Notes: generated from the sequence alone by a model not told the origin. 64,000 bases of DNA from Epithemia pelagica (GCA_946965045.2 OX337238.1:2232001-2296000), one strand, 5' to 3'. Counted from the first letter of the stretch, positions 1 to 5,651 are shown. Numbers and translations: made by a program.

Positions 1-3000
1 CTTCGACTCCGAATGATCCACTTTGAACAGTCACGTCATTTGAAATCACAATAACATCGCGGCCCTCTGGGTACTCGGGTGTCTTCATGGTGACTTTCCA
101 TCCCACCATTCCGACCTTGTTGGTTCCCACAGTTCGGCTTCCAAGGACAAGAGCACCAGTGTCGTCTTCGAGAAGCTCTTGAGCAGAGAAAACATTTCCA
201 GGAGCCTCAATGGAGGATCGTGCAGGCAAGCCACTGATATATTCATCCCATTCAGCAAGCAAACCCACTTCCATAAGTCCCAAGAAATCGTACGCATACG
301 TTGAACCAACACGACGAGCGTTGGCACGCTTCATCTGGACAATGTTCGATGTGGCGTATGGATCCAACACACACATGGATGATTCACCGCTTTCTTCCAA
401 CAGACAGAATTCGGTTGTGACGCCAGTCACAGGGTCGGGTGCTTCAAGGTATGCATTCGGGGTAAGGTATTGGCCATCAATCGACGAGGCAACAAGACGA
501 ACGCTTCGAGAAATTGGTGTGCCATCCTCTGCCGTAGACAACAGACGAATCTTGACTTCGATCTCGTCCACCCGCAATTTCAAAAGGCGTGTGGCAAGCT
601 TACTCTTCATCGATCCCATAATTTCCTTGAATCGCACGGCAAGATCAGTCGGGGAGCTGCCTTCGATTTCATAGAGAGAATGCAGGAAGATTCGTGAAGA
701 CGATTGACGTGTCACCTTCGAATTAGCTTGGGCACGCTCAAGTTCGTCAAGACCTTGTTGCATGGCTCTCATGGCACCAAGATCGGTCACCATTCCAGGG
801 CTGTGAGAGATTCCTCGAACAAATACAACTTGAGGAGCTCCACCTCGGATCGGCTTGTCAGATTTCTCCGTTCCAATGTAAACCTGAGCATTTCGACCAA
901 TAGCTGACGTACGCTCAAGATTGAAATTCTCAGCAAGACGATTCAACTCAAGAAGGTCAAAGAACGTAGGTCTCATGTTACGACGGAGTGGATCTTCCTT
1001 GAAACCTTCGCTCTGAGGGAAGGTGAAATACGAAGGATCCTTCTTGTTGTTGGGAAGGAGGAAGTTCGCGTCTCGGATACCCAATGCGTCAAGCTCCTTG
1101 CTATGGTCGGCGAGTAGGTATTCAAAGGCGCTAATCTCACCACTTTTACCGTCCGCAATCGCAACATGCAAGATGTTCAATGGACCTCCCTCAGCACGAG
1201 TGGGTGCTTCACCAATGCTCTCTGACAGATTCTCGAGGATTCCAGAAATATCAGATTTCAGACCATCAAATGAAGGGACGACGGAAAGAATTCCATGTCG
1301 AATAGGGGCTTTGCTTTGGTCGACGTCAGCAAACTGGAACGTGAACAAGCAGGTGAGACGACCGTCTTTTTCAGTGACCTGGAGGTCCAAGATTCTGTGA
1401 GCCCGGTAAACACGGCGAACATAAACTTCCATAGCCGCCATTTTGACGTCACTTGCGGGGTCGGTAAATAGAGAGGTCAAAAGATCCACACCAGCCGAGA
1501 GCGTACTGCTTCTAGAGAGCTTTGTAAAGTCAGCGGCAGGGTCGTTCAATTGAGCACGAAGTTCTTCTGCTCGACTTTCGAACGACGGAACCTTCGATTG
1601 ACGAATAATCTCGTCCGCAGCCAAGGCAATTTCTCCGTAAACCTTGTCCTTAAGCTCGGCCAGTTTCCCCAAGACTTCCATAAGCGGTTCAGGGAGACCT
1701 GCAGCTCCGAATCGGTCATCAAACAATTCAACTTGGCGGAGCATTGCAAGTACAAGACGTGCGCGGTTACGAAGTTGCTGGTGAGCCTGGTTTTCGGCAA
1801 TGACAAGGTCCAAGTCTTCCGCATTGGCCTTGGTCAAGTCACGGACAACGTCATCCAGAAGCTTTCCGGCAAAGATGCTTTCGACGCGCAAAAATTCGTT
1901 GAATGCCTCTGTGACAATAGCAGCGGCTGACTCCAAGTCCTCAACTCCTTCAAAAGGCTTTTGGGCAACGACTTCGGCATCACCACTGAAACCGGCAAGC
2001 AAGTTCTTCAAATCGTCCATTGGGGAGGTGGTATCTTCACCCGAACTGTCAATGCTGAGCTTTCCTTCAAATGTTCCGATTTTCTTCACCTTGGATGGAT
2101 CGGCCAGTTCGAGAGATGCAAGTAAGTCACCAGCAGAGATCACTGAACCAGGGGACAACGAGTGCGTAATCTTTCCCGTTTCACTGGCTTTCAGAGGCAT
2201 GATCATCTTCATTGCTTCGACCTCAACATAGGGCTGTCCAGCTTCGACGTCTCCTCCATTATCTTGGAGATAGCGCACAACCTTACCCGTCACATCTGTA
2301 CGGAGCTCCGAGGGATCAAAAATAGCAGGCCTATATCAAGAAACAAAAAGGTGAGGTTTTGCCTTCTCCACGCTGACCAAGTCCAAACTCTCTCAACACT
2401 TACATCAAAATCGTGTTTCCATCCACCACCAAACGAAGACCAAGGGGTTCGTCCATACCGAAGATGCGATGAGTTTCACCACCAAACTTGGCAATCAAAA
2501 ATCCTTCCGCATTTTCCGTGACTTGAACTTCAATGGTGCTTTCACCACACGTGAGGATCATCACGTCGGCAGCCTTGCGCTCCACGTGGAAGGGATATTT
2601 CATATCTTCAAACGCCACTTCGACATCAAACGAGTTGATTGCCGGAATGCCACTCACGCTCACTTGACCCTTGCGGAAGGATTCCTTCACTTCCTCCGTC
2701 GCTTCCTTGACATTTTGAAAGGCACGGAACACAGCAGCCGAAACGACCGTCAAGTCCTTGTCCAACTCCACCGAGACACTCTTTTCGCGAATGAGTCCAT
2801 CCAACCACGATGTATCAATGGTGTTGTCAATGAATTCCTTGGTCTCGAGAAGCTGAACCAAATACTCAACGGTGGTACGAATCTCTCCACGCACTTCAAT
2901 CTGTTTCAAGGCCAAGATCAAGGCCTTTCGGGCTTGTTCACGGGTGGGACCCTTGGCAAACAAGTGACCAAATTGACTGTCGGCAAATTCATGGATCCCT

Positions 3001-4763
3001 CCGTTGGCTCCGACACTAAAGTATCCCCACACACTGTTGGTGGACTGGAATTTGATACGTTCAATACTTCCCGAGGTGGGCTTGAACCCCTCGTCGGGGT
3101 TTTCGGCCGTGATACGAGCGGCAATCACATGGTGCTTGATGGGCTGGTAATCTTCCGTCATAAAGTCAATCGGTTCCGTCTCGTACATGTCCTTGCCATA
3201 CATGGCACGAATCTGGGGAATATTGTAGAGGGGAATTCCCATGGCAACCTGCAATTGTGTGGCAGGCAAGTTGACATCCGTGATTCCTGGAAAAGGCACA
3301 AACGCAAAACAACCGGCAAGTCAGCCACTTTCTGGAATGTTTCTCATTGTCGTCACCTCAAATGATAAACTTACCCTCTAATGGTGTTCAAGAGAAGAAA
3401 CCGCCAAAATAGAAGAAACAAGAATCAGTGTAAGACGCTTTGCTTCTGTAGTACTTCAACTGGTAGAAATTCATGATTTCCGAAGATACGTACCAGTCAC
3501 GGGATGCTCGACTTGCAAACGGGGGTTCAATTCCAAGAAAAAGTAATCGTCCGTGGCGGCATTGTACAGGTACTCGACCGTACCGGCTCCCTGATACCCA
3601 ATGGACTGGGTCAATCGCTGCGCGGCCCGTTGCATTTCCTTAAAGGTGTCCGGCTTGGCCACAATGGGTGGTCCTTCTTCAAAAATCTTTTGGAATCGAC
3701 GTTGTGTGGAACAATCACGACCATTGAGAGCAACGGCATTGCCATGCTTGTCTCCGACAATTTGGACCTCCAAGTGGCGAGCATTCTTACACAATTGCAT
3801 GACAAAAATCGGACTGCCCACCACTTCATTTTGGACTTGAATAAAGGCATTGCGCAAATCTTCTTCGTTGTCGACAAATCGAATTCCTTTTCCTCCGCCA
3901 CCTTCAGAGGCCTTGATCATGAGACCTTCTTCGTATCCAATCTTCTTGGCAGCTTCAATGGCTTCTTCGACGTTGGAACAAGTACCCTTTTTGAAAATAT
4001 CATCGGGAATGGTACCTTCGGGTGTCAAGTTGGCTTGGAGGGGACCATCGTCGGGACCTCCAAAACTCCCACTCCAGGGAATGGAGGGCACCTTGGCGGT
4101 TTGGGCCAAAATGTTGGCCGCAATCTTGTCTCCCAAGACACTCATGACCGGAGCCGTCGGACCAATAAACTTGACGCCAATCTTGGCCAAGGCTTCGGGC
4201 AATTCGGGTTTTTCTGAGGCATGTCCCCATCCCGGCCACACGGCATCGGCGCCCGTTTCTTCGGCCAACTTGGTAATGAGCGGTACATTGGCATAATTGT
4301 TGGAGTTCTTCCCGCCCGGCACTTCGACAAAGGAGTCGGCCAATCGGATGAATTCGGCATTGGCTTTCATGTCTTCCGGACTGGCCATGGCGACAAATTG
4401 GACGGCCCGTTCGTCGCCAAATTCCATGTAGGCCCACTGTCGCATGGAAAAAATCGCCTTGGTGGCGGCCATTCCATTGTTGGCAATCAAGACCTTGCGA
4501 ATGACAAAGTCACCGCCCCGAGACTTGACATAGTCATCAATCGTTTGCGTCGTCGTCGTTGTCGCTGCATCTTCCACCGTCGCCGACAAGGGAGCCGTGC
4601 GTTGCGGGTGTGAGGCAAGCGGTGGTGCAAAGGTGGTGGTAGTACTTGCAGCAGTCTGTTTGCTGGAGGGTGATGTCGTCGTCCATGTTTGAGACACAAA
4701 GGCGGCTGGAGCTGCACAAGCAATACATAGACACAAGGTGAGATACCGAAGTGGGAACCTCAT
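1..4763 (-). CDS. ACC1: Plastid homomeric acetyl-CoA carboxylase, 5' portion (runs off the window at base 1); exons 4763-3494, 3377-3375 (3-nt micro-exon), 3286-2404, 2330-<1
   Basis: Signal peptide ending AAF (MRFPLRYLTLCLCIACAAPAAF, ASAFAP-like). BC motifs KVLIANNG, KASEGGGGKG and ELNPRLQVEHPVT. Biotin site EAMKM at about 2218-2204. Carboxyltransferase start (KTPEYPEGRDVIVISNDVT) at the window edge. GT-AG introns 3493-3378, 3374-3287 and 2403-2331 keep the frame. Confidence 0.97.
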
Positions 4764-5651
4764 GGTCGTCGTGTAGGATGAACCCCCTGGTTCCAGTGTT
4801 GACACTTTTTGGAAGATTGCTCTCCTTCTCAAGATCGTCGCGTGATGGTGGTGATTGATCGTTCACCGGAAAAAGACACCACAACGAGAGAAAGAATGAT
4901 GAGGGACATCTCATCACACTCCTCTCGCTCTGGTCGGTCGACATCACAATCACACACACAATACACAACTACAACACCCCCTCCTCCATCGATGATGCCT
5001 GCTGGGAGGCAAAAGTACGTCACCACTGGTCGCGCTAGGTTGTACTGAAACGAGAAAGATCCATGTGTACGTACGTACTCTTGGGTGATGTGAAGCCGCC
5101 CGTGACACGAGGCGCCATCACCATCATCATCATCATCATCATGGCGGCCATTCCAACCCCGCTCCTCCTTGCGGTCCTCATGGTGGCAAATGATTTGGGT
5201 GAGACTATTCCAAATCAGTTGTTGCTGTTGTTGGTTGGTTCTTCAATCTTGTGTGTGTCGGTGGATTGGATCGCGGTGCGTAAAACTGGGGCACAGTGGC
5301 TTCGCGTTGTGTCACAAGCGATCCGAAAAAAGATTTGGTGCAAAAGGTTGATGGCTTGCGAAGTGCGAAGACACCCCCGCTTTCGGCCGTCCTGCCACCG
5401 CGCCGGCCAAACCCATAGCGACGCCATACTATCACCCATTAAGTACCATGAGGAACAATACGTCACCCCTTCTCACGGCGGAGTGCGGTATTCCCGAACC
5501 GCCAGCAACTTCCGGTAACTACACGTGAGTCGCATCTTCTCTCCCAATACCCAACGGACGAAACCAAAACAAAGGATCGATATTAAAGCAAAGTACGTAT
5601 TATGATACCGTAGAATATGATTTACCATTCTCTAGTACGGAACAAACGGGA

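Follow-up and report, generated by a model that had tools for sequence, protein, structure and literature searches.

Where does the glutamate of the RLQVEHPxTE motif come from in a gene whose two long exons, when joined directly, leave it out? The question is raised by an acetyl-CoA carboxylase (ACCase) gene on the minus strand of a 64-kb stretch of DNA, the whole of which we call the window. A sequence-only reading of the window had placed the missing residue in an exon of three nucleotides within the apparent intron, and had gone on to suggest that in-frame skipping of this exon could give a second, delta-Glu isoform of the enzyme. Here both proposals are followed up with domain annotation, public sequencing runs, enumeration of splice placements, a sister genome and a tree of related proteins.

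Results

Gene identity and domain layout

Judged by its domain content, the minus-strand gene encodes a homomeric, multidomain acetyl-CoA carboxylase with putative targeting to the plastid; the host is taken to be a diatom-like alga, an assignment drawn in part from the presequence type. Its parts are listed here in the direction of transcription, with window coordinates; throughout, a slash within a sequence marks a splice or cleavage position.

3494..4763, minus strand: first coding exon, from the ATG at 4763 (from translation) to ...LQVEHPVT plus G, base 1 of the Glu codon
3378..3493, minus strand: intron A, 116 nt, GTACGT...cattAG, with a CTGAT branch-like motif and a pyrimidine-rich 3' part
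3375..3377, minus strand: micro-exon AGG, 3 nt; the preceding G plus AG gives GAG (Glu), and the last G plus GA gives GGA (Gly)
3287..3374, minus strand: intron B, 88 nt, GTAAGT...ttttccAG, with a CTGAC branch-like motif
2404..3286, minus strand: next coding exon, Biotin_carb_C and BT domain, opening GA ATC ACG GAT GTC AAC = (G)ITDVN
2331..2403, minus strand: intron C, 73 nt, phase 2, GTAAGT...atatAG, our control for a plain intron
1..2330, minus strand: following coding exon, biotinyl/BCCP domain, ACC_central and start of the carboxyltransferase, running past the window start

By translation, precomputed Pfam annotation of the open reading frame P0001 and PDB matches, exon 3494..4763 encodes, in order, a putative signal peptide with transit-like presequence, Biotin_carb_N and ATP-grasp (PF00289 and PF02786 on P0001). 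The reading frame of exon 2404..3286 (P0121) carries PF02785, with the BT domain (PF21385) on this same middle exon, and PF00364, PF08326 and PF01039 (Biotin_lipoyl, ACC_central and Carboxyl_trans) lie on the next same-strand reading frame of L002, which is this genome. The order along one strand of L002 in the precomputed Pfam annotation is accordingly Biotin_carb_N/ATP-grasp, Biotin_carb_C/BT and Biotin_lipoyl/ACC_central/Carboxyl_trans. Biotin_carb_N, ATP-grasp and Biotin_carb_C together with the RLQVEHPxTE catalytic-loop motif, which is whole only with the micro-exon included, are those of a biotin carboxylase, and in the PDB the ACCase exons find counterparts in the biotin-carboxylase domains of ACC from yeast, human and Chaetomium (E = 1e-27 to 1e-36). 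BT, biotinyl, central and carboxyltransferase domains belong with them to a single polypeptide, the C-terminus of which lies beyond the window. A spliced 6.2-kb contig of the sequencing run X6, described below, joins the ACCase parts within the examined region 2200-4900 and continues below 2200.

The translated N-terminus reads MRFPLRYLTLCLCIACAAPAA/FVSQ... (FVSQTW), after which come about 70 residues rich in Ser, Thr and Ala, the presequence being encoded at 4695-4763 on the minus strand. We take it to resemble the bipartite plastid presequence of diatoms (ASAFAP-type), a putative assignment. Phe at position +1 after the signal peptide is a hallmark of diatom plastid import, and Phe stands at the predicted +1 of the putative signal peptide here (4695-4763, minus strand).

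Splice signals within the 207-nt gap

On the minus strand the upstream exon, with translation ...FLELNPRLQVEHPVT, ends ...CAA GTC GAG CAT CCC GTG ACT G (3494), directly after which stands GTACGT. The downstream exon starts GA ATC ACG GAT GTC AAC at 3286, preceded by the acceptor TTTTCCAG, whose last base is 3287, so that the outer gap between the long exons is 207 nt. Direct joining across this gap gives VEHPVT-GIT without the Glu; splicing with the micro-exon gives ACT GAG GGA ATC. Inside the gap a pyrimidine-rich stretch leads into cattAG/AGG/GTAAGT, and the CTGAT and CTGAC branch-like motifs stand about 35-40 nt upstream of the respective acceptors of introns A and B. The genome therefore holds a copy of the three bases between a canonical acceptor and a canonical donor, with workable introns of 116 and 88 nt on its two sides, lengths that are normal for this gene given the 73 nt of intron C. 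Coordinates, exon ends, the 116/88-nt split and the branch-like motifs, as first proposed, were all confirmed on our own minus-strand reading.

Intron B also contains a second in-frame AG/AAA/GT (3329-3331, minus strand), which would yield T-E-R-I. We rejected the AAA at 3331-3329 as the exon because the mRNA holds AGG and the donor of the AAA, GTGGCT, is weak; AG/AAA/GT could occasionally give rise to mis-spliced mRNA.

The three bases in mature mRNA

Four public runs were aligned on 2200-4900 as assembled contigs, which show that a form is present and not its proportion or any minor forms. Contigs from X3 and X4 are collinear with the genome, introns included, and are DNA. Run X6 comes from the same study as these two and bears the same organism label, its library type not being on record; we take it for RNA on the grounds that two introns are missing and that depth is zero inside introns (0 in bins 3292-3473). 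Its contig of 6,228 nt, at a word depth of 1,076, is collinear over 3494-4679 and has a further piece at 2403-3287. Intron C serves as the internal control: X6 lacks it, with a joint from 2329 to 2403 that skips 73 nt (CT..AC, cut +1) and has no letters between. At the site in question the X6 joint runs from 3494 to 3287 and carries two additional letters, CT on the plus strand and AG on the minus. Read on the minus strand the joint is G(3494)-A-G-G(3287)-G(3286)AATC; the exon's third base, a G, was assigned by the aligner to 3287, the G of the acceptor AG, and the mRNA is hence ACTG-AGG-GAATC (in full, ACTGAGGGAATC).

A second run, X1, recorded as a metatranscriptome, contributes a 543-nt contig from a relative about 90% identical (52 differences over 541 aligned bases), in which the same two letters occur at the same joint and introns A and B are absent, again giving ACTG-AGG-GAATC. 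The three bases are thus found in mature mRNA in both X6 and X1, while the plain intron of X6 shows no extra letters. A direct joint from 3494 to 3286 is listed for none of the four runs at contig level. The junction check called for by the sequence-only reading thus came out, at this level, in favor of ACTG-AGG-GAATC, carried by X6 and X1, with ACTG-GAATC in neither.

X6 and the window differ at 15 positions within 2460-4694, some of them common to DNA runs X3 or X4 (e.g., 2460, 4047 and 4089-4284). As the differences are partly common to DNA runs, they suggest that the material sequenced contained two haplotypes or strains, as opposed to RNA editing.

Is the exon regulated?

The skipping proposal, in its developed form, holds that the three bases are a regulated cassette whose conditional, in-frame omission produces an inactive or dominant-negative delta-Glu ACCase and so tunes plastid fatty-acid synthesis. 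Skipping does keep the reading frame, and most plant coding micro-exons show some alternative splicing, though they are usually included (PMC8831610). The inclusion form alone was seen in the two contig-level data sets, contigs being prone to drop minor variants. No skipped junction is present in the contigs of X6 or X1, a form of data that cannot show minor forms, and no VEHPVTG[IV]T protein, the product of skipping, occurs among 250 relatives fetched. It also should be considered that the donor GTAAGT and the acceptor, both strong and conserved, are what would be expected for constitutive use. We therefore regard a regulated cassette as unlikely, and the delta-Glu isoform envisaged at the outset found no counterpart in contigs, which drop minor variants, or in the proteins.

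Source of the three bases

Using a local script, placements of the 57-nt joined string against the genome were enumerated. The AGG-bearing mRNA has no two-piece placement on the genome and 24 three-piece placements, among which AGG at 3377-3375 is alone in giving both introns GT..AG ends. An alternative pair of splice sites supplying the Glu, which would have told against the initial proposal, is accordingly absent among canonical placements in this enumeration. Shuffling the intron interior 200,000 times gave some canonical Glu-restoring 3-nt exon in 5.4% of cases, AG/AGG/GT in 0.8%, and AG/AGG/GT plus a GTRAGT donor in 0.04%. A single occurrence of the 13-mer TTAGAGGGTAAGT is found in the 64-kb window, where 0.03 are expected. 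Introns A and B show no similarity to each other (z = 1.6), and no other copies of either were found in the window or in L001, the sister locus described next, beyond chance words of 12-14 nt; an origin by internal duplication or from a repeated 'introner' element has no support, with the two introns dissimilar and further copies absent.

The next-best match to the protein, P0002, reads into an intron after VEHPVTG just as P0001 of the window does. Its locus, L001, lies on a 543-kb contig of ENA assembly ERZ25042306. There the upstream exon ends ...CAT CCA GTG ACA G/GTACGT and is followed by a 100-nt intron, then by ...cttttAG/AGG/GTAAGTac, a 245-nt intron and ...tgttcAG/GA ATC ACT GAT GTG AAC. 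The search for a conserved AG/AGG/GT in other ACC1 loci, proposed together with the exon, was thus successful in L001: TTAG/AGG/GTAAGT is identical at 13/13 positions (window 3381-3369 vs L001 5415-5427) and in the same codon position, and the outer donor G/GTACGT is identical also. The introns around it have diverged. Because their lengths differ (A/B of 116/88 nt in the window vs 100/245 nt in L001), a global alignment misplaced the micro-exons, and we compared each intron separately with shuffles; intron A aligned no better than shuffles (z = 0.7) and intron B was weakly alignable (z = 3.2). An identical 13-nt block inside diverged introns points to selection on the micro-exon splice signals, and by this comparison TTAG/AGG/GTAAGT is under purifying selection. 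Conservation of the micro-exon was found in this one other genome only.

These data bear on whether the AGG might come from elsewhere, through non-canonical sites (e.g., a 2-nt AG piece with a CA acceptor), through insertion or editing, or from an intron-less strain or allele. On paper 23 non-canonical placements exist, X6 differs from the window at 15 positions and possibly stems from another haplotype or strain, and the record is silent on its library type. The canonical placement is unique, however, and its 13-nt block is perfectly kept in the sister genome while the introns otherwise diverged; the collinear contigs of X3 and X4, from X6's own study, contain the introns; and X6 is also without intron C, with depth of 0 only inside introns, as expected for cDNA. 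An outside source is in our view very unlikely. Judged by canonical splice sites and conservation, on which the assignment rests since the mRNA alone is insufficient, the AGG of the mRNA is exon 3377-3375.

The glutamate and the spacing of the protein

Solved structures offer an independent view of the junction. In the PDB alignments the residues at the two exon ends pair as T372/V375 in human ACC1, 378/381 in yeast, 390/393 in Chaetomium and 382/385 in human ACC2, always with two residues between them. The direct join supplies one residue (Gly, from G/GA) and the micro-exon two (Glu + Gly), which restores the family spacing. The exon-terminal Thr aligns with residue 300 of 1bnc, making the missing Glu E301 and the Glu of VEHP E296, in keeping with the E. 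coli numbering (Glu296...Glu301) first suggested. By word search, VEHP.TEG[IV] is present in 113/113 site-crossing sequences among the best 120 relatives, and the Glu in 195/195 site-crossing sequences among the 250 proteins fetched. The predicted junction peptide is identical to P0065 over 28 residues. In these alignments the restored Glu is invariant and equivalent to E301 of E. coli biotin carboxylase, five residues after the catalytic Glu.

A single 207-nt intron, with a main mRNA joining ACTG to GAATC and an enzyme reading VEHPVT-GIT without the Glu, is almost certainly wrong, for although its outer GT (3493) and AG (3287) make a canonical, in-frame pair that a simple gene model would pick, X6 and X1 both carry the extra bases with no direct junction, 0/195 relatives are without Glu and none has VEHPVTG[IV]T, and the spacing in solved structures demands two residues.

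Age and distribution of the architecture

The diatom ACCases P0003-P0120 represent this protein too, with 81-87% identity over the biotin-carboxylase core and the same short phase-2 intron C; they differ in having ACT GAG GGA ATC uninterrupted, with no micro-exon. In about 100 of the 120 best relatives the reading frames cross the TEG site and end within 0-31 residues at ...T(I/V/T/L)LM. These ends are read-through into the conserved intron C donor, and so the roughly 100 relatives represent genomic frames without an intron at the TEG site. Intron C itself (..NTILM/PAIFD) lies just ahead of the biotinyl domain, and its position is shared by about 100 of these 120.

Three diatom-like loci carry one phase-0 intron at LQ/VEHP, namely L003 (4156-4269), L004 (1754-1826) and L005 (from 2209), in the form CAG/GT...AG/GTG GAG CAY; it lies 19 nt upstream of intron A of the window, and ACT GAG GGA ATC is uninterrupted in all three. 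A maximum-likelihood, midpoint-rooted tree of the 326-residue biotin-carboxylase core separates their proteins into two sub-clades, one with P0106 and the other with P0097 and P0115. Given this separation, it seems from the tree that a 20-nt stretch of ACC1 gained introns repeatedly. The same tree pairs the window with P0002 as its sister (support 100/95; 91.4% identical), both nested among lineages without an intron at the site.

Further carriers were sought in two ways. A word search with the middle exon returned only the window's own reading frame, and no other genome, with a reading frame starting at the window's 3286 acceptor; a pattern scan of metagenome DNA with the end of exon 1 plus donor (GTNGARCAYCCNGTNACNGGTR) yielded no further micro-exon carriers. 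At least 120 loci matched GTNGARCAYCCNGTNACNGGTR, and almost all were set aside as chance occurrences of VEHPVTG in unrelated, mostly bacterial genes. The sole biotin carboxylase among them, L106 (OJFX01014933.1), was set aside as a different paralogue. It encodes FYFMEMNTRLQVEHPVT/EMITRQDLVEWQL on the minus strand, at about 559-640 of the reversed locus, and its sequence suggests a eukaryotic alpha subunit of the methylcrotonyl-/propionyl-CoA carboxylase type. L106 has an ordinary 54-nt intron (G/GTATGA...TGTAG/AA) in the same phase-1 position in the Glu codon as intron A, a shared position that would be either old or a preferred insertion site.

With most relatives lacking an intron at the site and the two carriers being sisters, the micro-exon architecture appears to be derived, young and confined to two genomes in the data searched, which are a small sample.

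Discussion

The locus is very probably to be read as two short introns (116 and 88 nt) flanking a constitutively included 3-nt exon, AGG. The mRNA contigs, the unique canonical placement and the conservation in the sister genome together bear out the original proposal that the exon is real and supplies the Glu.

For introns of about 100 nt intron definition is expected; this gene's introns measure 73-116 nt, and introns A and B would each probably be recognised across itself. AGG/GTAAGT matches the CAG/GTAAGT consensus at 8/9 positions. The entire micro-exon would fall within the U1 footprint on AGG/GTAAGT, abutting the acceptor of intron A, and this near-perfect U1 match probably offsets the missing exon body. 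The 3' and 5' splice sites, 3 nt apart, are probably not occupied simultaneously; with simultaneous assembly on both unlikely, the introns would probably be removed one after the other. As to origin, a pair of intron gains, 3 nt apart, presumably took place in the common ancestor of the two species, at a point where most of the sampled relatives have unbroken coding sequence.

Exons of this size are known from other groups. Land plants have coding micro-exons of 1-15 nt, such as the 1-nt exons of APC11 and VPS55 (Yu et al. 2022, PMC8831610); most exons of this class were unannotated, read mappers mishandle them, and the 1-nt exons have a conserved strong GTRAGT donor (PMC8831610). The ACCase exon shares with them an internal position at a length too short for exon-definition signals, canonical sites with a conserved GTRAGT-type donor, and placement in a conserved protein region (PMC8831610). 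The plant exons are usually included and are typically missed or misannotated by gene prediction and mappers (PMC8831610). Unlike them, the ACCase exon is found in a diatom, a stramenopile, next to the catalytic loop in an enzyme of central metabolism, and in contrast to their clade-wide conservation it is young, occurring in two sister genomes only.

Animals have a class of neuronal, SRRM4-dependent micro-exons of 3-27 nt. The ACCase exon resembles them in size class, in a multiple-of-3 length that keeps the frame, and in inserting one or two residues in a folded domain. The animal cases, however, are mostly regulated cassettes with long introns and intronic enhancers, whereas in the ACCase gene the introns are of about 100 nt and only inclusion is seen. 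According to PMC9929638, animal micro-exons of 3-30 bp are well known and MPC1 has a constitutively included 4-bp exon.

There is also a likeness to recursive splicing, in that a 3' site abuts a strong 5' site, implying stepwise removal of the flanking segments. Long Drosophila introns contain recursive splice sites, or zero-length exons, at AG/GTAAGT ratchet points. The ACCase case differs in that the mRNA keeps three bases, which by comparison with related proteins would be essential for the protein, and in that its introns are short, with no need for subdivision.

Within diatoms, the multidomain plastid ACCase gene of Cyclotella cryptica was reportedly described by Roessler and Ohlrogge in 1993, and a 73-bp intron near its biotin-binding site is said to have been reported. 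Our literature searches found no link of micro-exons with diatoms, the only co-mention, with each word once, concerning vertebrate synaptic adhesion molecules, and none on a micro-exon of an ACCase gene, where co-mentions mostly concern the plant transcription factor WRINKLED1. Ultra-short micro-exons being known in plants and animals, the diatom ACCase case is a new, well-supported example.

There are practical consequences. The prokaryote-style reading-frame calls in both genomes break at the micro-exon site, P0001 ending ...VEHPVTGTYLRKS at a stop and P0002 continuing ...VEHPVTGTWNF..., and in keeping with this it is plausible that gene predictors miss the 3-nt exon. Gene models that ignore it would describe an ACCase without an invariant residue beside the active site, or a truncated protein, which would matter both for annotating and for heterologously expressing an enzyme that is a frequent subject of algal oil research.

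A bolder extension would make the exon a recently evolved switch, with condition-dependent skipping giving an inactive or dominant-negative subunit in an oligomeric ACCase. We hold this to be quite unlikely; were it true, it would mean post-transcriptional control of carbon entry into plastid fatty-acid synthesis in these diatoms.

The locus is a compact natural substrate on which to study how a spliceosome working by intron definition deals with 3' and 5' splice sites 3 nt apart. With most sampled relatives having no intron here and two sister species having the full architecture, it would also represent a rare datable birth of a micro-exon, by two intron gains three bases apart in a strongly constrained coding motif.
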